From assembly GCA_016748015.1 (NCBI GenBank), contig JAAOMT010000227.1:121239-185238 (forward strand): DNA of 64,000 nucleotides, read 5' to 3'. Below are positions 1,420-54,845 of the stretch, one piece after another. The translations under genes were made by a program, and so were the position numbers. The first letter of the stretch is position 1; every line of letters starts with the position of its first letter. Source of the stretch: Geosiphon pyriformis uo1. Taxonomy: Eukaryota; Fungi; Glomeromycota. The notes under the pieces are model-generated. The model searched no databases. It saw nothing but the letters and a program-made list of their open reading frames with translations, and had not been told where the DNA came from.

Positions 1420-4400
1420 CAACTGCTATCTAATACATAGAACCAAATTAAGTAACCCAAACTAAATATAACTTATATACTTATTACATATGGCTAGCCA
1501 TTCAGACCAGACAAAGCAATACTAGACTTCTATATTAATCTGCACAGCACCACCCAGACCAGAAAAGAAACAACATAGTTTATAATAACCAAAGTTAACT
1601 ACAAAAGATTCAATTACACTAAGCAACCTAATCACACCATCAGACAATAACAAAAACACACCACAAGACAGCCCAAAAATCACATCACCATCATAAACCA
1701 AACCAGCTCATTCCATATTCACCTTGTAACTAGACTTTACTAATCATGCCCTTTTATGATACAACTCCATGACAAACCTCACAAAATCAACAACCTGACC
1801 AGTAGTCTCTTTCCTATTATCGAAAGCACCATAAACTTTATTACACCACTCTTTCAATACAAACCTCTTATACAATATAGCATATAATCTAACATCTAAG
1901 AAGCATTAAGACAGAATACACAAAATGGCAAATGCAAATAAATTAGAAACACCAGCCAAAGTAGATTAATGTGCAGAAGCTTTAGCCAAAATTTCATTTC
2001 AAATACCAGCATTACAAACACAAGTAAAAGCATAATCAGAAAACTTCATTTCATTATACAATAAATACAACACTCCAAAGTAATACTTATTATATATTCT
2101 CTTTCTGACTACCACTGGTAACTGTCTGTGTATAGTCTTTATTAAATATGTACATAGGCAAGAAAACTTTCAACTAGTAAATTCAGCAAGCATATAAGAA
2201 TTAGAATACCACACCTTTGTGGTAGCAACCCAGTTTACACATTCGACTAACACATTTACAACCACATTATAACCTGGCCCAGCTTCCCAATGAGCTTGAC
2301 TAATTGACTAAAAAATATTTCTGACAAAATAACAAGTATTACCAAAAACAGCTGTGTCTTTAGCCACCAAAAAGTGCTCATACACTTCAGCCAACAGTAA
2401 AAAAGGAGACTGAGCAGCCACCCCAGCTGCCAAATCAGCCTTTATATTACCAGAAACCCTTGAATGTTTTCTAATCTTGACCCAAACTACATTCAGATTC
2501 TTCTCTCTGACCAAATTAGAAATATAATGCCTTTCTATCCAGCATGAGTTGCAAAAATCAGGTGCAGCAAATGACAATTCAGCTATGCAAATATTGATTG
2601 CAGCTTGGCTGTCGAGATACAAAACTACCGAACAAGAAGATAGAACACATTCCAAGGACAAAGCAACAGTCTACAGCTCGGCCATAGTAGAAAATAAAAG
2701 ACCACAGACCAAAACACCAACACATAGATTCAAAGCCAGAAAATAAGCAGCCATATCACTAGTAACTATAGCAGTACCAGCATCCTTTAGCAATCCATCA
2801 GTGAACACTTCAAAGAAGCCAGACCAAACCTTATGCAAACCATCTTTCACAACAAAAAATTCATCTGACTCAAGAATGTCTATGCCATATGGCTGACTGG
2901 ATATAGTAAAACCAGATAAAAGAAAACTTAAACCCAACAAATGCTCAGACACAACCACAAATCAGCAAGGAACAGAACCACATGAATCTAGCCTTTTTCA
3001 ATGATAAAAAGTTTTCCAATCTAACACTTCACCCTTTTTATCAAAAAGCTGATCACCAAAAACAACCCCAAAACACTTCAGAGAACAAACAAAATTGAAG
3101 TACAAAAACTTCCCAAGGATTAATAACAATAGATAATGACCAGGATTATGGAAAGTATTTGGAAGGTTGTTAACCAATGAAAGCTTATTGTCCAAAAAAA
3201 TTTTTATCATTTCAGCCAAAAAGTTATTTACCAGACTAATATGTAACTTAACAAAAAACTACAAAGAATTCAAAGGAGCCCAATTCAAAACCTGTAAGTT
3301 CAAGAATCTATGACTGAACAAATGTCCAAGAATGTCTATATTATTGGAAAAAAAAATCAGAACAGCCACATTTGCTTTAGACTGCACTTGCTCAAAAGGC
3401 TTCAAGCCATACAAGAAGGAATGATACAAAACTACATCTGAAAAATTATAGAGCAGACACACTTTTATTTTGAGATTCTTCTTGACTATAACATCCCACT
3501 TGCAACACACATTTGACAAAACAAAACTGAATTGAATTCAATAACTAATTATAGGCTGCAGAATAGCTGACACTAAATAAGAAAATTGCTTATTTGTAAT
3601 AGCTTTTTGAAATACAACATTAACAAAAAAATAAACATCAGAATGAGCCTTGGTAACACTCGGCTTGAACAAGTTATTGGTAAACAAAAAAATTTCCAGA
3701 TAACAATAAACATCATCTTTCTTGACAATTGTAATTGGTTAACCACAGATACTCAAAAAAATAACCCTAACCCTCTGATTTATGAGGATAGCCACTGTTT
3801 TTTTACTGTTGATAGAAATATCATTGATTTCAAAAAACTTGCTGGCAATCTTCAAAGCATACTGAGTGGAGGCCTAATAACTACTAACCCAAATAGTGTC
3901 ATCAACAAACACATCTGCTGCAAAAAATATAGTCATCCCACCACTATTTTCAACTCTGTCAGTCTTTGAAACAAACTTAGTATTAATTTAGTACTCACAC
4001 AAATGTTTATGTCTTTTAATTTTACACAAAAGTGAATCATAAAAGATCTTCCACAAAAGTGGTAAAAAAATCTCACTCTAATTCAACCTATCAAGCATCC
4101 TATAACCATTTGACAAACCAAAATTAATCATTACTCTGTTAATTCTATTCTCATAAATACTACTAAAAAACCAGATGAATTTTTCACATATTTTAATACA
4201 TCACAAGCTATTCCTTAAGTAGTACCATCTAATTGAATTGTACATTTTATGCATGTTTTGCAGAACCAACCAAACCTCTCTATTTTTTTCAAGAGCATCC
4301 TCAATCATTGATTCAACAGCAAACACAGAAGATTGTGTGGATGTACCTCTCAACACCAAAAAATTATTGTCCTAAAGAATATTGAACTTGCTGCATGCCA

Positions 4401-6200: not shown

Positions 6201-8193
6201 ATTGGAATAAAAAATATAATAAAGAACCCAAACCAGAACACAATTGATCTAATCTAGCCAACACTAAACTAATTAACTCTTCCAAAAACATCATCTTTAC
6301 TTCTAAGCCACCTATTTTATTAGTCAGCATCTTGAAGCTACTCAAACTGGGTACAACATCATTAACAACAGAGAGAGGAATAATCGGTGGCACTAGTGCA
6401 CCATCTAAAGCCATATCTGATTCCAAACCCAAGATTGATAATTCAGACACAGAAGAAAGAAAAACAAAAAATGAGGGCACCAAAAATACCAATTCTACAA
6501 AGCTTAGCTTTTTCACAATGACAGAAATCCAATCTGCCAAAAGTTTTAAAGAGCACTCTAAAGATGCCAAACAATCATTCAAACTAGAGACCACAAGAGA
6601 GTTAGAACCTAATGAGAAAGATTTTACACCTAGAAGTAAACCAGTGCCAGAAGTGACAGAATAAACCACTTGAGAAAAAAAGCCATCAGCAACTTGGACC
6701 CAAGTTTTCTCACTAAAAGAAACTGGGCAAACAATAAATGCCTGCTTTTTTTTATATATATTGGCCAAGCAAACCTGATTTTGAGAGATCACTATCTGCT
6801 TACCATACACACCAGAATTTCTACCCATTGAACACACATCAGAGACATGATTAAGTTGTTTACACTTAGCACAACAGGCCAAAGAAAGACCTCTTTGGTG
6901 CAAATTTACTCTTTTAAAAACTGGCAAAAAACCAATAACAGCATTTTTTGACTTCTTGTCACCAAAACAAATAACAGTACTTTTATTGTAAACATATAAA
7001 ACCAGATTATGGCCAATAAAACAGGTCTTTCTACCATATAAATTCAACAAATCTGACAAATTATAAGCTGTAGTACCAATTAAAAAAGTATAGAGCAGAG
7101 TCTGATGCTGATTCTTATTTATCTATGAATCTTTGTCATTAACAGTTAGAGCCACCTGCACTGAATTTTTATCCACAAGAACTGACTATTTAGAAATAAC
7201 TGAACAGACCACCTCTGAAGATTCAAACTCAATTAAAGCTTTCTGTCAAAGACCAATTAGCTGTAGCTTGATTGAATTAATTTTACCAAATTTAGAAAAG
7301 ACTGTTTCTACTGCTGATTTAAAAAGATCCACTGGAATTTTTTTAACAATTATTTCCCAATTGGTATGACCAGTTGTCTTTTTTACATCATTATTAACCA
7401 GAATTTTTTTGCAGATTGCCAAATTTTTTGCCTTATTCAAACTTGATTCAGATATAAAAAAGGATCTGATAATCCCTAAGAATTTCGAGGGAGTAGAAAC
7501 TTCTCCAAAACCATTTACATGATAAAAAATTTTTTTAACAGAAATTAATTTATCATCAATAGTCTTACCAGATACCATAGATAGCTCAATATCTAACACA
7601 AATGATTTAACTGATTCAAAGCTATGTTTTTTCAGAACACATAACTTAACAAATAGCAGCTGATTAGACCCAACAAATTTAGGTGCTGAGAGTACCAACT
7701 CAATATTATTATTATTTAGATTTTTAAAAGATAGTACTTTTGGTAGTTGCCCCAAGATGTAAGTCTTTGTTTATGTCTTTCTTGGAATTGTGTTGTCTAT
7801 CATATTGTCTGTATTCAAAGCATTGAAGTTGACATAGCTTGTCTTTTTAGTTATTGTGTTTTTTAAATTTTCAACATCCAATATCTCACTCACACTGCAT
7901 TTGTCATTTTCAATCTCACTATCCCAGAATATCTTATGTTCCTCACTTTCAGCTTGGAAAACATCAACAGAAATAAGACCAGCTAACAAATTTACTAAAC
8001 TACCAGTAACTTCAGGAATCTTAGACTTTCTGTATGAAGGGCCATAAGAGTAGATATTTTTAATATACACCTTTTTCTTAATGTTAGACCAGGTTCTTAA
8101 CCTAGTTGAAATAAAACCAGAACCACTAGCTGAAGTACTTACTGGATTTATAGCAACAAAAAAAGGCATGTTGAAAGAAATAACTGAAGACAA
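6199..8193 (-). pseudogene. LINE-1 ORF1 (gag-like, CCHC knuckle)
   Basis: ORF fragments 7771-8193, 7246-7755 and 6199-7059. CAKCKQLNHVSDVC fits CX2CX4HX4C. Confidence 0.8.
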
Positions 8194-44802: not shown

Positions 44803-46560
44803 CTATTCATTGTCAGCATAAATTAGTTTTGGACAAGTAACATTTTTAAATTTATTCTTTACAAATAGACAAATATTATTATAAAGGTATTCTTGTCTTT
44901 TGTAATCCAAAAGAGGTGGTGTTAACACTAAAATAAATAAAGCTTTAATTTTTTCAAAAATATCTGTTCTCCTAATTTTTAATAAATTAAATTCAACAAA
45001 AAAACCATTAGCAACTTTTTGAACTTTTACTGTACCAAAATTAGATGTTTTAAAAAAAAAATTTTGATATTTTTGTAAACTATTTAATTTTTTAAAATAA
45101 ATTTCCAAAATAGCTTTAATATCCAAATATTAAAAAATTTTTCCATCTTTATAATATTGAGCTTTATTTAATTCTGCTGGACTAGATTTTTTTACCACCT
45201 CAATCACATAATTCAAACAGTCTACTCTTGTTCTTCTATAGAGTTTTTAATCATCTTAAAATTGCTATCATATTTGAATTTAGTATGTTCTAGAACCATG
45301 AAATTTAATTCAATGTTTTCATAATAACCACAAATTACCAAATATAAATAAAACCAAACTGTTACATTGTTTTTATTTTGTCCACCTGCATTATTACAAG
45401 TAATCTTTAAATGTTTTTCATCTCTATTTATTTTCTTAATTTTATCAAAAATCATATTAAGAGTGTCATTGAGTTCTTTTTTTATAATTTTATCTTTATT
45501 AAAAACATAATTAATTTGTTTTTTTGCTGTTTTATCTTAAATACCAAATAAATAAACTTTACATAAACTAAAATAATAAATTTTACTTATTTGTTGATCT
45601 AAATAAGACACATGAACATTTTGGGTTTAATTATAACTATAATAAACAGTAGTATTAATACTGCAATATTGTGTTTTACTCTTTGAATATTTTTGGTTAA
45701 CTAGTTTTCTTTGTTCTTTTGCTAATTTTATATTTTTATTATAAAATTTTTTTTCTATTTTGGTCTTGAATAAATGTTCTTTAAATCTTTTGAGCAAATC
45801 TTTAGTTTCTTTTTTTTGGCAAACATTGTAATATAAACTATCTCTAAAATGTTAACAAGTATTACATAGATCAGTTTTTGGACTTATAATTTGAATTTTT
45901 GGTGTTAATTGATGTCATAATTTTTTGAAAGCATTATATTTTAAGGATTTTATATTATTATTATTTTCTTTTATACCAGCCAGAAAATTTTTGTGGACTG
46001 ATTTATAACTCATTTCAGCTGGTAAGAATACAATTGATTGAGTTATTCTATTGATACTTCTTTCTGGACTTGGCAATCTATAGATTTTTGCATAATTTTC
46101 TAGAAAATTCTTTACTACTTCTGTAATATCTTTGTCAATCACTATCTTAGTTATTCATTGAAGTATTTTTTTTATGTTATCATAAACTCTTGGTAAAAGA
46201 CTATTGTTTATCAGATAATTTCTAAGATTCTTAAAATAAGTTCTATTAATGCCCAACATATTGAGATAAGTTTTTTGACAAAAAAGAGTATTATGATCCC
46301 AGTAATAAAAAGTTCTTTTATTAGATCTAGTTTTCTTTTTAAAATGGCTGCTAGCACTTCTTGATCCACTATCTATGGCTTTAAGTTGGATTATTAAAAA
46401 TGTGTTTTTGTTCTGATTTAAAAAAAGCTTAAAAAAATTCTCTTAATTCTGCAAATTCTTCTTTGGAAATTCTTGAAGAACAACTACAATTACATCTTTT
46501 TTCTAAAAAATCAATGGCTTTTTAATATATATTAGAACTATTATATTTATTACTTTTCAT
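44803..46560 (-). pseudogene. Sola1-like DDD transposase
   Basis: SPKTDLCNTC; YYSYN*TQNVHV (eroded YDWAQ); TCNNAGGQNKNN (DNxGGQNKN); FMVLEHTKFKYDSNF (GHT...D); KRQEYLYNNIC...TCP. Family assignment is from remembered motifs. Confidence 0.8.
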
Positions 46561-46989
46561 ATATATACTTATCTTTATATATATAATTTATGTTTACTTT
46601 GTAGGTTTTTTTATTATGTTCAAAAGACATTATACCTGTATTATTACATAAATAAATTGAAAACAAAGTTCTCTTACATACTATCATTAGAATATTTGGT
46701 TCTTACTTTATTTTTAAAAACATCAATTAATGCTTTAAAATTATTTTTAGTCAAATCAACAATTAAAAAAATCAATGAACAAATTATTCTAACTCTTATA
46801 TATAAAATTTCAAAAAACATATTTACAATTAAGCAAAAATAAAATAAAATTTCTAAGCTAGAAGAGTATAATACTAAAATACAGTTATTACTTATTAGTT
46901 ATTCAATCTCTGTTTTTTCTTATTTATTATTTTTTCTCTTTTAACATTTGAAATAATATTATTATTGTTCAAATCATTACTTAAGGTTA

Positions 46990-47290
46990 TTTGCTCACAT
47001 AAAAGTTCATTGATAATAGTAAACACTTGACAAACTTCATTTTTTAGAGTTTCTTAACAAGTACTTATTTTATCAAATGATATATGGTAGATATTTTGGC
47101 TTGTTGAAATTATGTCATAATTTGCTGAAAAAGCAATAAAAAACCAGCTTGTAATATCAATGACAATTCTATAAACACTATTATCTTTATGCTTGTATTT
47201 AGTATTTTCTTATATAAAATATTGTAATTCAATATCTATAGTCTATTAACAATTCTTATACAGAAAAATAAACTGTAAAATACTCTAGTA
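46990..47290 (-). pseudogene. REase-fold (Crinkler-associated type) remnant
   Basis: ENTKYKHKDNSVYRIVIDITSWFFI...TSQNIYHI...VCQVFTIINELL resembles the AMF ..KRK....YGIVT....W.F family. Confidence 0.45.
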
Positions 47291-48175
47291 ACAGCTCCCA
47301 ATTAAACCAAATTTTGTGCTACTCCCCCAAACAAATTCTGCATCTTTGCTTTAGTAATATATATAACATTTTGTTTGTAGTAAATTTGGAAGTTTAAAGA
47401 ATCTTAACCATGTGTTCCAGATGAATGTTATTCGATGCAAACACTAATTTTATCTGCATTCTTCTTAAGTACTTTTCAACAAAAGTGAACAGTGTTGTGG
47501 ATTATGCTAAATATAAATTCAAATTAAGTTGCTTTATTACTGTCACTAAGCATACCCAAATTATCTTGTCATTTTTGAATTTAGAGAACATAAATAAGCA
47601 ATTTGTTTCCAAATTGAAAAAAGTCGCAGTATGTTCTACATATTTTATTGTAACAATAAAAAATAGGTATTTTAAGATTTTTAATTAAAGAAATATACAA
47701 TGTATTATGTGTTATTTTTTCATATAATAACTAATTTTTCTTAATATTTTATATAATAGAAAATACAGCAAATACACAATCTAAAATCAATTCATTATTA
47801 CTGCAGAATAAATAAATCTTATGTTATAAATTTGATTTCAATGATGCTATCACTGAAATTTCAATTACATGATTTTGATTTTTATATAAATTAGTGACTA
47901 AATTTTAATAGCATAATAGAATTTTTAAATGTGGATCATTTTTCAAAAATTGTTACATGGTTATTTATATTATTTTACAATAGTTACCTTATTAAAAATA
48001 ATGCTATTATATGACAAGTCACAGATTTGTATATCAAAAAAAAAATTTTTTTTATAGACATGTAATTTTCAAGCTTTTTTATTATATCCTATATTCTAAT
48101 CAAATCTGATCAAAAGTTTTCTCATAATAATACAATAAATAAAATTTATAATAATAGGAGATTTAAAATGTTATA

Positions 48176-48636
48176 TGGTTGGCTTGGTCTAAAGACCTCC
48201 TATTTTTGTGCCATATGATCAAAAATTTCAAAAATAGCAATTTTGTAATTCATTTAAAATACAATAAATTTTTTTTAAAAATTTTTGAAAATAGGGTTTT
48301 ACGTAATTTGGGGTTTAAAAATTATTTCATACTGCCAAATTTATATATAATGATCATGTGCTAATCTAAATTTAAAAATAATTTTTGTGGTTTGGTCTAA
48401 ATTTAGTAATAATCCTAAAAACCAAATTCCTCATGAACATAGTAAAGTACATGTTCTAAAAAAAAATAGAACTTTACAACAAATAATTTTTTTGAAAATA
48501 TCTCATTATTATATTAAAAATAAAGACTTATTCTATCAACTAATAATACTATTTTTTTAAAAAGTAGGACAGAAAGTGACTTTTATATTTTTAATATTTA
48601 TGCAAAATTTAAGAGATTTTTAGACTAAGCCAATTA
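48176..48636. mobile_element. MITE (461 bp) with ~24-bp TIRs and probable TA TSD
   Basis: tggttggcttggtctaaagacctc versus the reverse complement of gagatttttagactaagccaatta; TA on both sides. Confidence 0.65.
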
Positions 48637-49458
48637 TAATAACACATACAAATTTAAAATATGAAATAAAAGAATCAATAAACTTAACAGTATAAAAGAA
48701 ACAAGAAACTAATAATATTACAAATAAGTAAAAATAAAATATTATTATTATATATTTACAAATTTAATTTTTATGAAAAAATTTAAGAATTGAACTTAAT
48801 AATTACCTTTTTTTTGGATATATTTAGAAATTTAAAATAGTATTATATATTTAGAACAAAGATAATTTTTTACCATTCTTTTATTTAAAGCATTATGAAA
48901 TTCAATTGTCTTCCAACTGGTATCTTTTGCTGCTAAATACAATTCAATATATAATTTGTAATCATTTACAAACTTATTTCTCATTTCAGTTATTTGATTA
49001 TAAAGCAATATACAAAACATGTTATAAGCATGCAAGAAAACAATGCACAAAACATGTAAAATTTGTGAAACAGCATGTAAATATGTTTATTAACACAACA
49101 GAAATGTTAATATTCTATTTACTAATAAAATAATGATTTTTTTTTTAATAAAGACAATATCCTGTTTATATAATTAAAGTAAAATATAATAAAAATAATT
49201 CACAAAATAAATTCCAAATTAATTTTATATAAGACTATTCCTCAAAATAATTAATATATATATATATACACACATATATATTTAAATTTAATTTTTCACG
49301 TAAAATAATGATTAGAATTAAATTTCATATATATTAAGATAATAAATAAATTCTAGCCAATAAACTCAATTAAATTTGTCGATCATTATTGACCAATCAC
49401 AAAGAAATTTTGTTATGCTAATCTTAATGTTAATACAAAATTTGTTTACTCTATAATT

Positions 49459-52127
49459 ATGGCTATGCCTAATGAAAACAGATAACTTATTGATTTTTTT
49501 TTATGAGATCTAACACAATAGTAACCCTGCTTTTCCTCTGTCCATACTCTAAAACAGATTCTTGAATATTTCAATTGCATGTCTTCCAAATGGAATATTT
49601 TAAACTTCTTAGATAAATGTGATCTGAAACAATTTGATCAGAAAATAGGGCTATACCTTAAATCTCTGGAAAAAATTGCCAATAAAGAAAAAGGTAAAAG
49701 ACAATAAAAAGCACTTATCCTGCTCAAAAAATACAGAATGGCAAGTGTTAGTTTAGAACTCCTGTTAAAGATTTGGTGGCATGGGAGGAATCTAGAAGGT
49801 TTCTGTCATTCAAGTCTAGAAGGTAAGCCACAAAGCTAATGTTAGGGCCCAGGTGATCTAGAAGATTGCCTGGTGTTTAAGGCTAGAAGCTAACCTAACA
49901 TTGGCCCCACAGGGCGCGGACAATCTAGAAGGTTGGCCAAGTTTAAGGCTAAAAGCTGAACCTGTGGGATAAATAAAAAAGTTAGGAATTTGTTAATTAA
50001 AAATTTGCTAATTCTTTGAATCTTCTTTATTAAGGTGCTTAATCTGATTACAATTTGGCAAAAAAATAGAAAAGTGAGCATGAATCAACTAGTGCCATTG
50101 GTGAACCTTCAGTTTACCTTCATAATCCAACATTTATAGGAAATCCTTTGGTAAAAAATACTGGAAACATTAATGATAGGACTTTTAAATTATCTGAAGA
50201 AAGTGTGCCAAAAAGGAAAAAGAACAATGATCATAAAAAGATATATGTACACATTTTTTTAGATATATTTATTACTTTGTAATTTTATTCCTAATGAAGA
50301 CCTTAATATTTAGGATAATCCAAAACGAACAAAAACTATTGATAAAGCAGAAAATATAGATGATAGTAGGACAGATTCAGAATATGATAAGAAAAATTTA
50401 AACTATGACGATGATTTAGACTATGATAATAATAATGATAATGTAGATTATAATAACTACGATATCAATCCAAATATTGAGTTATCAGAAAAACAAATAC
50501 CAGTCCAAAATCACTTAAAGTACCCCAATAAAAACAGTTCAGACAATATTTGGAAGTTGCCTTCTGGCAAATCTATTAATAAAATAATTTGTGGCCCTAA
50601 AAATTTGCACAAATTGCAATAGGTTTTATCTTCTTTATTTCTTCTCTTTATGTTTCTTGATCTAACAAATTAGCCCATGTAATTTGTATATAGCCCATCA
50701 TATTTAAGTATTTTACACATTGGATCAAAAATCAGGAAGCCGGAATGGATTAAGCAAGAGAATTGGAATTATTTAAATTCAAGTGTTGAATATTCACATT
50801 ACAATTTATCAACCAAAATTGAAGATCTATTCAATGTACTATTAGAAACTGTAAGTACAAATAGTAAAAATGCTCATTTATTTTAATGAAAATGTTATTT
50901 ATATATTTTTATTATTAATTAATAACAGAATTCATTAAATAAGTATAAAAATTGTCTTTATAATATCACATTTGACCATGAGAAAAATATAAAAATGACA
51001 TTTGTAACAGATGTTCTATTATGGTTGTAAGTATAAAAGTTTTGTAGAAGTACTGTTTATTTCTCACAATTTATTTTTTAATTTATTTTAATTTTAAAGT
51101 GCAAAAAACATATTCAACACTAAAAATGAAGCATTGTTGAGATCATTTATGATTCATCTAGTACTACAATATCTTGTAAATACAACCAATCACATTATAT
51201 ATGTGCCGTATGTTTTTTGATTAAAATATCAAATTAATACTTTCATTTTTCTTTATAATATTAAATATGCAAGTTTTTTCAAAAAATAGAGGTAAGATTT
51301 ATCTTAAAGCTAATGCAAATTAGTGATTATTATGATGTAACTTCAAACCTGATAATGATAAACTCTTGGACATGAAAGTTGATGGTTCTTTCTAGTTTCC
51401 AAATGATAAAAGACTAGAAATTGGCATGGTTGAATTATCTAGTAGATACTTAACCAAGAATACACTTTGTTATTTAAAGAATCACGTAAAAAAAAATTGG
51501 GGATGCCATGATCTCTTTAATAAAATAATTAAAAAATACAATCATGATAACTATAAAATTCTGAAACATTTATGTGTTTGGTTTTTCTATATACATGGTA
51601 AGTTAATAGATAAGCTGAATTTTAATTTTTGCATTTGTTAATAAATTGTCTTTGCTTGTGCATAAATCTTGAAGTACAAATATGGGGCATAGATTTGCCT
51701 GTTGCAAAAACTTATTGAATGTTTCTTATTGATGTCTTTTATCTTCCAATCAGTTGGAATAACCATTATAAACTAGTCCACGCATTAAGGGTTTTGCAAA
51801 ATCTTAGGGTAAGAAAAATCTTCATTCCTTTGTATTGAAAGTATTGAAATATCTCATTTTGATCATTATTTATTTTCATACAGAGAGGTTTAAATGATTC
51901 TCTTAAGGTACTTGAAGAATTCAAAAAGTCACATCACCAAAATACAATTATATGCTTTCAATCTCCAACACTAAAAAGATATATGGGTGATGCTAAGAAT
52001 TCACCACAAAAACCTATGGGAAAAAAATCACATATCATAAATCCAGTAATGCATCACATGTATCATGATCATGATGATTCCAACAATTAATATGATCCAT
52101 TTTCACCATCTCCATCAAGACATTAAA
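49459..52127 (+). pseudogene. Multi-exon Glomeromycota-type gene with C-terminal PD-(D/E)xK-like domain (cargo)
   Basis: EYFNCMSSKWNILNFLDKCDL...; acidic tract; IWKLPSGKS; VDGSF...LEIGMVELSS; QIWGIDLP. Several short GT-AG introns and one GC-donor intron; in-frame stops. Confidence 0.65.
49772..49968 (+). ncRNA. Candidate intronic structured RNA: three abutting three-way-junction units
   Basis: Units 49772-49834, 49835-49905 and 49906-49968. Each has a different outer stem that still pairs, and two hairpins with C(UAGAA)G loops. Confidence 0.7.
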
Positions 52128-53046
52128 GATGAAATTAAAGTTTTTATTTACTATACATTGAATTTAAATTTAATGAAACATTTTTTTAACATGATTATTG
52201 AATTATTGGTTAGCGAGTATGTGTAAAATTTATTTTGCATTCTTAAAATAATATTCTTGAGATATGAAATGGAAATTGTTAAGTCTTACTATAAAAGTAT
52301 AATAAAAAATTAATAAAGTAATCCACAATAAAACTTATTAATCATTATCAAATTGCATAATTTGCAATGTTTTTATTTATGATTTAGTCTTGATTTGATA
52401 CTGTAAACATTCAAATAATTATCACAATTATTTAATGGTTTTAATAAAAAGATAATTTAATTGTTTTAAAATTACAAAAGTTATCTTTTATTTGATTAAA
52501 TTTTAGTCCTTTAAATAATAAAATTACATGTTTTAAAATAATATAAATTATAAATTATATTGTAATAATTAAATAAATTAAAATACAATCTCTAGATTGT
52601 ATGAAAAGCTTATAGACTTCTCAGAAAATACAATCATAGTTAAAGATAACTTTTATTAAACATAATATAAAAATAATAAATAATATAATAATATTCTCCT
52701 CAATCTAACAATATGAATAATAATATAACATCTAAAACCTCTAATAAAATATATGATTACAATTATAATAATATCTTTAATTCTTTAGCACCATAACAAT
52801 AATACTGATTGTTAACAGGATTTTTTTGGATTACCAAATATGGTAATAAAAATTAATTACCAAATTAGAATTATTATATTTTTTTTTTGTGATCAATAAT
52901 AATTCAAAGATTGTTACAGATACCCTGTGATAAACATATTTGATTCATATTTTTTGGAATTTTTGATGACAGTCCGTTGCCAAAAATTTAATACTTTAGT
53001 TATATTTTAAATAAATAATAAGATATAAAAAATCTATTACTAAAAC

Positions 53047-54845
53047 ATGCAATCTGAAATTGATTCACTAAAGCAATGAATTTCTGAGCTTGAAACCAAG
53101 AATGCCAAGCTTTTAAAACAGGTTATGGAAGAGAATGCCAAGTGAAAAGCTGAAAATGCTGAGCTTAAGGCCAGAATCAAAGAGCTAGAGAAAAATAAAA
53201 TAGATACTACTAACCTTAAGGCTGAGAACAATAAGCTTAATACCAGGGTTGTAAAATTAGAACAGTCATCAAACAATATTACACACGAATTAGAAAATTC
53301 TGTTCTCTACAAAGCATCGTCTATAAAGTTGTGAGTGAAACTCTTCCAAAAATCAGTCATGGAGTTTTGACATGTCATACACTAATTGTTTATTAGAGTT
53401 TTGCAGAGTTTCGCATTTTGGGGGTTTTGACAATTGACAGATTTTTAATAGGTTGCACATTAATTGTTTATTAGAGTTTCAACAGAGTTTCAACTAGTCA
53501 CTAAGAGGTTTTGCCCATAACTTTAATCATTCGATATTTCTTCCAATATATGTGCACCCCCATCCAAGTCTAAATTGTTAGAAGATATAGAGACTGATAA
53601 TTTTCTAGATGTGCAGAGTAAGAAAGAGGTTAGTGATATGATAAGAAAGAAAAGCAAGAAAAAGAAACTTCAAACTCAAGGGTTACATAATACCTCTTTA
53701 CCAATGTCAACTCTGTTGATATTATCTGAAATATTAATTTCTAATGATAATTCACCTGAAGTCTTTAAAGCTCTGGACTTAAAAACCAAGAATCAAAATC
53801 AAATTAAAAGCCAAAACAAATTACACAAGAAAAAAGGAACTAAGAATATTGCTCAAGTGATAGCTGATGGCATTTAGGATGCACTTGCACACAGCTTCAC
53901 TGATAATATCCATTCAGAATTGAATCATGTGACTGAAATTTCAGTGATGGGCCATTATCAAAATTTTGATACAATTTCATTATTTGATTTAGTTCAATTA
54001 TTTGATAAAGCAACTAATGCTGAATATTATGCTATGAAAGCTAACCAGAAAGAAACCTTATGCTGGATCAACTATGGAAATGAATTCATAATTCAGTATA
54101 ATAATCTTATAAAAAATAGTAATAGCAAAATTGATAAGAAAAAGGCAAAAAGTATAATTTGTAATAAAATATTACTATTATCTGTAAAAAAAAATCCAAG
54201 GAAATAGAATTACAGCTTTCAGAAATTTTACATAAAACTTTATTTAGAAAACCCAAAAAGCTGTAAAGACATATAAGTTATTTGAAAAAATATACAAAGA
54301 TAAAATTAAGTATCTTAAAACATATAGCACAAATTCTATTTCAGAGTTAACCAATGATCAAATTCAAAAGATTATCAATAATAATAATATTTTTGATTAT
54401 GATAAGTTCAATATAAAAGAAAAATCAAATCACATGACTGAAATTTCAACAACATTTTGTTACCAAAATCATAAAACTGAAATTTTGCCTGAGGTAAATA
54501 TATCTATCAAATCCAAATCTTTAACTCTTCTGTAAAAATAAAGAACTTATTAGAAGCCAAGATAAGTATACCATTTGTATTTCATTCCAAAAAGGCTTTA
54601 TTAGAAACTGAGATAAATGTATTATTAGTATTTTAATCTCAAACTGAAACAAAGACTTTATCTAAGAAACAAAATAATCTAATCTATGACTATGCTTACT
54701 TTCATAATAAGATATTGTTGTAATATTCAAATCTATATAAAACATTTATTGCTAAAAAATTTGATTACTATAGAATTAATGAGAGATCATTATGCCCAAT
54801 ATGTAAACTAGATTATAAAGATGAAAAAAGTATAAAAAAGTAATA
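53047..54845 (+). pseudogene. AMF-type expanded-family coiled-coil gene (MQSEIDSLKQ...), cargo
   Basis: MQSEIDSLKQ*ISELETKNAKLL...; EDIETDNFLD; ANQKETLCWINYG; TQKAVKTYKLFEK...STNSISELTNDQIQKII; C-terminal SLCPICKL. Confidence 0.65.

Follow-up and report, generated by a model that had tools for sequence, protein, structure and literature searches.

A conserved, modular structured RNA family with gene-specific loops in the first intron of a fungal gene family

Locus and array layout

The sequence analyzed is a 64,000-nucleotide (nt) stretch of the Geosiphon pyriformis genome (contig JAAOMT010000227.1, positions 121,239 to 185,238), referred to here as the window and numbered from its first nucleotide. 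At 49772-49968 on its forward strand (+) lie three abutting structured RNA units of 63, 71 and 63 nt with no spacer between them. This array is a copy of a conserved, modular, sense-strand structured RNA family, and homologues of two exons of a host gene flank it on either side. The features of the locus are listed below in their order along the window, with the scores of the units taken from the covariance model R1 described further on.

49580..49740, +, exon 1, about 53 codons kept (jackhmmer against exon 1 of Jimgerdemannia flammicorona, E 6.5e-26; translation; comparison with contigs C669 and C566)
49741-49746, +, candidate 5' splice site GCAAGT, at the position used in relatives (phase 0; sequence)
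49747-49752, +, candidate 5' splice site GTTAGT (phase 0; sequence)
49772-49834, +, unit 1 (class u1), with UCAA linker, 3-base-pair (bp) hairpin and AA (R1 66.6 bits, E 3.9e-15)
49835-49905, +, unit 2 (class u2), which folds best (-33.8 kcal/mol, z -5.5; R1 77.4 bits)
49906-49968, +, unit 3 (class u3) (R1 67.2 bits)
49792-49798, 49816-49822, 49858-49864, 49883-49889 and 49925-49931, +, CTAGAAG loop 7-mers (sequence)
49949-49955, +, CTAAAAG loop 7-mer (sequence)
49969..50034, +, 3' part of the intron, with an AAUAAA-like run followed by a branch-point candidate and AG (end placed by the exon 2 homology at 50035)
50008-50012, +, CTAAT branch-point candidate (sequence)
50033-50034, +, candidate 3' splice AG (sequence)
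50035..50279, +, exon 2 homologue (jackhmmer against J. flammicorona exon 2, E 1.4e-8)
50314..52087, +, further open pieces of 102, 67, 81 and 75 codons, possible later exons (open reading frame translation)

All three units follow one plan, in which an outer stem encloses a hairpin of about 12 positions that begins directly after it, a UYAA linker, a 3-bp hairpin and a closing (G)AA. A first-pass annotation, made from the sequence alone, had described these units with their stems and loops, and the sequence reads exactly as it claimed. Checked by hand, the outer stem has 8 bp and one bulged G in unit 1, 12 bp including one U-G pair in unit 2, and a perfect 8 bp in unit 3. Of the long hairpins, given in that annotation as about 12 bp each, that of unit 1 has 11 of 12 positions paired, with three G-U pairs and one G/G mismatch, and that of unit 2 has 12 bp and one bulge; that of unit 3 is weaker than implied, with 9 of 12 positions paired and three mismatches. 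Of the six loops in the window, five are C(UAGAA)G and the sixth is C(UAAAA)G. The units agree with one another in 60-70% of their sequence, and their stems covary.

In the three units, an unbroken 5' strand of 21, 24 and 20 nt passes from the outer stem into the long hairpin. Such a 20-24-bp coaxial helix might serve as a small-RNA precursor for a Dicer-type enzyme, a reading that is very unlikely, since the side hairpin breaks the 3' strand and precursors of this kind are not marked by conserved loops.

Folding, strand and database searches

The array region forms an island of 40-42% G+C in surroundings of about 20%, and the window has three matches to the loop-linker-loop pattern, compared with none in 100 shuffles. 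The minimum free energy (MFE) of the forward strand is -74.4 kcal/mol (z -3.9), a value equalled by none of 200 shuffles, and that of the reverse strand is 22 kcal/mol weaker (-52.1 kcal/mol, z -1.5). For the G+C-rich copies on contig C688 and in J. flammicorona, which are described below, the MFE is no better than that of shuffles (z +0.4 and -1.0), so that the support there is comparative and not thermodynamic.

A cmscan search of window positions 49000-50800 against Rfam 15 with E up to 10 returns only two chance-level rows, namely lincRNA-p21, whose 18.3 bits fall well short of the gathering score of 75, and mir-297, which lies within an AT repeat. The latter, spurious row has its source in a (TA)n/(TG)n microsatellite at window positions 49254-49281. 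Four related loci searched against Rfam with E up to 1 give no match. The earlier proposal of an undescribed RNA element, lacking the cores of hammerhead, HDV, twister, pistol, hatchet, hairpin and TPP motifs, is supported by the scans of both the window and its relatives. Taken together, the family described here is absent from Rfam and was found in no literature text search, and it is undescribed as far as these sources show. ARAGORN finds no transfer RNA gene in the window; the UUCAAG linker looks like a T-loop word, yet no T-stem closes it. A box C/D-type kink-turn, formed by GUGA and CUGA, was considered and rejected because the GUGAC in question belongs to the covarying long hairpin.

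Distribution of the RNA family

Pattern and DNA searches of the 128-Mb G. pyriformis genome identify homologous arrays on contigs C693, C566 and C688. The covariance model R1 was built from ten units at four loci of this genome, with the window's units in the training set and without any foreign sequence, and its search finds units at a dozen further loci in the same genome. R2, a further model for which 36 units were used, finds at least 57 units at about 25 or more loci; 150 first-look candidates were scored, so that these counts are lower bounds. Scores of the three window units lie between 66.6 and 77.4 bits under R1 and between 55.0 and 72.3 bits under R2. The unit classes u1, u2 and u3 are orthologous across loci, and their order is constant at each locus.

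The family extends beyond G. pyriformis. Jimgerdemannia flammicorona (Endogonales) carries a full three-unit array, detected by R1 with E values of 1e-10, 1e-7 and 1e-5; Gigaspora rosea has a degenerate copy carrying an insertion, and a gene of Endogone sp. has a looser version with CUUUAUG loops. A covariance-model search had been named beforehand as the check to make, and it recovered array homologues both in the genome of origin and in J. flammicorona. The junction elements, a (U)UCAAG linker and a GA after the short hairpin, are conserved throughout.

Two further paralogues and a second Endogone gene hold other structured elements in their first intron. An intact paralogue on contig C692 (L041, about 3065-3320), missed by the model, has a different insert with CUCUUAG at least three times. 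Another intact paralogue that the model misses, on the minus strand of contig C648 (L040, about 2690-2920), has an insert with UCUGG-type loops. The Endogone sp. gene of protein P0111 (L078, about 1870-2150) contains an element of about 120 nt that is duplicated, has repeated CCCUGCG words and is likewise missed by R1.

Covariation and selection on structure

In an alignment of 36 units, standard pairs fill 84.0% of the cells; shuffling lowers this share to 69.2%, and sliding the registers lowers it to 30-49%. Cells in which both partners have changed number 165 against a shuffle expectation of 70.2, and changes on both sides occur at 20 of the 24 pairs, all counts that are inflated, since the units were aligned by fitting them to the model and their three classes are paralogues of one another. 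An alignment of 35 units gives a similar pairing result. Compensatory changes are also present inside each orthologous unit class; for example, the outer stems of u2 and u3 differ between the window and C688 by replacements such as U-A to G-C and A-U to U-A. The excess of pairing and of double changes over shuffles bears out the proposal that the structure is under selection. The stems, however, vary freely only among the three units of the window, and across loci each class keeps fairly similar stems with compensatory changes.

G-U cells number 171 and A-C cells 28, a ratio that favours an RNA transcribed in the sense direction, as had been proposed. This ratio and the 22 kcal/mol difference between strands also bear on whether the array is a DNA-level repeat, such as a fragment of a miniature inverted-repeat transposable element or short interspersed nuclear element, or a cluster of recombinase or nuclease sites. 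Inverted repeats do flank each loop and the same 7-bp word occurs six times, but the strand asymmetries, the fixed position in one intron of one gene family and the single-copy flanks in the window leave this the least credible of the explanations considered.

Loop sequences

At each locus, one 7-nt loop word is common to the long and short hairpins of all units, and this word differs among loci. Its general form is C-U-NNNN-G, and at least nine words other than that of the window are found. The mean mismatch is 1.03 between the two loops of one unit and 3.09 between loci, a comparison inflated by the kinship of the loci, though the pattern itself is evident. The loop words are listed below with the loci that carry them.

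CUAGAAG, window, C693 and C566
CUCUAAG, C688, C630 and C651
CUCAAGG, C669
CUCUUCG, C654
CUGCUCG, C701
CUGUUAG, C646
CUGCUGG, C715
UUUCUUG, C779
CUACUAG, C662
CUGCGGG, J. flammicorona
CUGCUAG, G. rosea

The concerted change of all loops between paralogues suggests a partner that is specific to each paralogue. A search for the complement of the loop within 1.5 kb on either side of 16 loci gives three 7-mer matches against about 2.9 expected, at inconsistent positions. Kissing between loops was rejected as a general rule, because palindromes (CUAG, CUCGAG) occur in just a part of the loop words.

The loops also argue against a triplicate self-cleaving ribozyme or a ligand-sensing riboswitch. A three-way-junction architecture with conserved junction nucleotides would suit either one, and an intronic position is shared with the fungal TPP riboswitches. 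Even at E values up to 10, however, no Rfam family is matched, and the loops, which inside a single gene are constrained more tightly than any other unpaired segment, vary by paralogue, unlike a catalytic core or ligand pocket. The reading is highly improbable, and for the ribozyme option of the first-pass annotation in particular there is no supporting evidence.

Position in intron 1 and the host gene

The gene family has a first exon of about 60 codons upstream of the array and a conserved second exon downstream. With the J. flammicorona exons as queries, each searched individually and with no spliced gene model joined, 14 of 18 loci have a homologue of exon 1 upstream of the array, and 11 of the 18 have one of exon 2 downstream. 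The array takes up most of intron 1. The remainder of the conserved gene follows the array in J. flammicorona, G. rosea, Endogone and the G. pyriformis contig C688. With exon homologues on both sides of the arrays and family genes, annotated or mapped with a profile hidden Markov model (HMM), following them in other fungi, the intronic location proposed earlier holds.

At all loci inspected, the array is placed 22-35 nt past the 5' splice site and 40-70 nt ahead of the 3' splice site, and the 40-70 nt between array and exon 2 contain a CTAAT- or CTAAC-type branch-point candidate and an AG. Intron 1 seems, from the reading phase, to start with GC at several loci: joining exons 1 and 2 in phase requires such a start in L064, L072, C688 and J. 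flammicorona (GCAAGU, GCGAGU or GCACGU). The C654 copy has GUAUGG as its candidate 5' splice site.

This similar spacing at every inspected locus, together with the absence of a loop complement in cis, would fit a purely architectural role, in which the modules draw the 5' splice site and branch point together in the manner of a yeast 'zipper' or slow the spliceosome, with loop identity left over from descent, biased mutation or micro-conversion. That the array does nothing else is unlikely. The six loops change jointly between paralogues as the stems stay orthologous, which is hard to explain unless selection acts on the loop sequence; tracts of only about 7 nt, as shared here, are too short for conversion; and the conserved UUCAAG and GA junction suggests more than bulk structure.

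Several observations concern individual copies. The public gene model for J. flammicorona P0074 (L074, 1650-1990) splices into the array, so that the residues following '...DLETGR' are translated unit 3 and the annotated protein is partly an artefact. An AAUAAA word stands directly 3' of the array (49969-49982 in the window) in the lineage of the window, C566 and C693, and AUGGGA stands there in other lineages; the former could be a polyadenylation signal for a short transcript of exon 1 plus the array. The C693 array lacks exon 1, and the idea of an independently mobile array was considered on that account; it was dropped, as the downstream intron and exon 2 are common to C693 and C566.

State of the window copy

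The expectation of an intact host gene in the window is not borne out. In exon 1 an in-frame TAA (49705-49707) takes the place of a CAA codon of the relatives, and exon 2 has a frame break and a TAG at about 50060-50070 in an A-run, with frames 1 and 0 each matching half of J. flammicorona exon 2. The frame break could be an assembly error. The closest relatives, on C566, C693 and C669, are broken too, and the window copy is, judged by its reading frames, probably a relic of the host gene.

The open pieces at 50314-52087 are long for DNA so rich in A+T. A resemblance to the family seen by eye was not confirmed by the family profile HMM, hhalign or Pfam, none of which gives a match for these open reading frames. 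Searches of the 128-Mb genome with window positions 50000-52300 and 46500-49550 return no long match elsewhere, and no convincing terminal inverted repeats were found around the gene. Since gene body and upstream DNA are single-copy, the earlier placement of the gene on a transposon is not supported. Further downstream, at 53047-53340 (+), lies a coiled-coil-like open frame broken solely by three in-frame TGA codons.

Host protein family

A search of 1.84 billion proteins yields 107 representatives of the host protein family at E<=0.001, distributed over Glomeromycotina, Endogonales and one chytrid and including one Geosiphon protein. The AlphaFold model of one member, P0005, has a predicted local distance difference test score (pLDDT) of 69 overall and of 85-96 in the C-terminal domain. 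Compared with chains of restriction-endonuclease fold, residues 362-576 of this model give VIA Z scores from 10.6 down to 5.2, among them 7a5f_s3 (10.6, over 207 residues), DrdV (7.7), BpuSI (7.3), HsdR (6.3) and TT1808 (6.1). Foldseek with the P0005 model gives no match at E<=0.001, and the N-terminal 120 residues of the Endogone protein, used as a query in a word-based search, recover only that protein. The C-terminal domain of the family models as a PD-(D/E)XK-type, restriction-endonuclease-like fold, which is a statement about fold and not about activity. The nuclease fold suggested by the first-pass annotation is in this way supported by modelling for relatives in the family, and the open reading frames downstream of the window array match neither the family profile nor Pfam.

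On contig C688 (L012), the minus strand at 6334-6858 encodes the C-terminal exon of a G+C-rich paralogue with 89% protein identity to P0001, a partial protein of Endogone sp. FLAS-F59071. Elsewhere in the family, identities across lineages run from 50 to 66%. The higher value may reflect horizontal transfer between G. pyriformis and Endogonales, or else contamination.

Interpretation

The explanation that we favour, tentatively and at odds that we would place below even, is that the array, as part of the pre-mRNA, serves as a multivalent platform to which a partner particular to each paralogue binds. The simplest candidate is the host gene's own protein, and the array would regulate the removal of intron 1. 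The six like loops would act as docking sites for this one partner, perhaps a dimer or multimer of the host protein; restriction-endonuclease-fold proteins often act as dimers. Binding near a weak GC 5' splice site would decide whether intron 1 is removed or retained, and a retained intron would place a stop after exon 1 and lower the amount of nuclease-like protein. In the window, translation from exon 1 into the unspliced intron is predicted to meet an early stop. Distinct loops would prevent cross-talk among paralogues. The structured inserts in the same intron of the C692, C648 and Endogone genes, each with a repeated loop word of its own, count in favour of this explanation. A multivalent binding site or autoregulatory element, as first proposed, accordingly stays our best guess for the function.

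Several points weigh against the platform. Apart from the inflation of the pair counts given above, Pfam identifies no domain in the host protein family, and no RNA-binding domain is recognized. One loop of each module stands on a long arm and the other on a much shorter one, an arrangement that a simple symmetric dimer would not readily fit. In the broken copies the array is better kept than its flanks, with 81-89% identity where exon 1 has 75% and the downstream intron 57-60%, and a better-kept array in a broken gene agrees no less well with a function of the RNA that does not depend on the protein. Under the platform explanation, the window copy would probably be a recent relic, or would work independently of the protein.

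This preservation is the strength of the main rival, in which the excised array persists as an RNA of about 200 nt or as single modules and acts in trans with the nuclease-like protein as a cofactor, an inhibitor ('antitoxin', compare ToxI-ToxN) or a specificity element, so that the host exons matter less. If the excised array were a stable protein partner, its outlasting the coding exons would be explained, and the array does outlast its flanks in apparently dead copies, with a conservation that equals or exceeds that of the coding exons. Between J. flammicorona and the G. pyriformis copies, nucleotide identity is 62-82% in the array and 52-61% in the flanking exons even in local alignment. 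Gene-specific loops, and a multi-copy family with many decayed members that resembles selfish genes, point the same way. No processing signals were identified, however, and the modules are not identical repeats, unlike those of ToxI, and this rival is in our judgment rather unlikely, though likelier than the architectural role.

A further possibility, which we regard as doubtful, is that each of these selfish, multi-copy nuclease-like paralogues carries a cognate RNA partner in intron 1, which would make them a eukaryotic parallel to RNA-antitoxin or RNA-cofactor pairs. The six copies of a paralogue-specific address loop would keep the nuclease switched off or guide it, and selection on the RNA would continue even where the exons have decayed.

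Comparison with known systems

The array can be compared with four groups of known RNAs. The U1A polyadenylation-inhibition element and the Escherichia coli thrS operator, with its two anticodon-like hairpins, also present twin loops of the same sequence in the gene's own transcript, an arrangement that suggests two bound protein copies and feedback on RNA processing or translation. The array differs from them in having six loops on three tandem three-way junctions, in being intronic and in its paralogue-specific loop words.

Tandem modules that repeat one short motif, and are encoded beside or act on a cognate protein, are known from CsrB and RsmZ, which serve CsrA, and from ToxI, which serves the ToxN nuclease; ToxI-ToxN pairs are cognate-specific as the array loops are gene-specific. 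These RNAs are bacterial and non-intronic and their repeats are near-identical, whereas the window units, 60-70% alike and covarying, are not near-identical tandem repeats of the ToxI kind. The toxin folds of ToxI-type systems also differ from PD-(D/E)XK. The Ire1 substrates HAC1 and XBP1 share with the array twin hairpins with matching 7-nt loops, which there mark unconventional processing by a nuclease. Only some of the array loop variants fit the Ire1 consensus CNGNNGN, however, and the array has three modules where Ire1 substrates have one pair, and the nuclease fold is different.

Structured fungal introns that control themselves include the RPL30 and RPS14 pre-mRNA sites, the TPP riboswitch and the yeast 'zipper' stems (PMC12350175). 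The array matches none of these in sequence or model and is modular and tandem with paralogue-specific loops. In contrast to RPL30, RPS14 and the TPP introns, its host is a nuclease-like gene and not a ribosomal or vitamin-pathway one.

Significance

To our knowledge, few structured RNA families with solid covariation are established in eukaryotic nuclear introns beyond small nucleolar RNAs and the TPP riboswitch. The biological weight of the window copy itself is lower because its host gene looks dead. The family to which it belongs is a modular RNA conserved from Glomeromycotina to Endogonales at least as well as the adjoining exons, and its six displayed loops shift together between paralogues, which is a rare pattern. 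It ties an RNA family to an uncharacterized, nuclease-like gene family that has expanded in mycorrhizal fungi. If the loops address the proteins of their own genes, these loci would hold natural orthogonal RNA-protein pairs and a new mode of control for a potentially dangerous enzyme.

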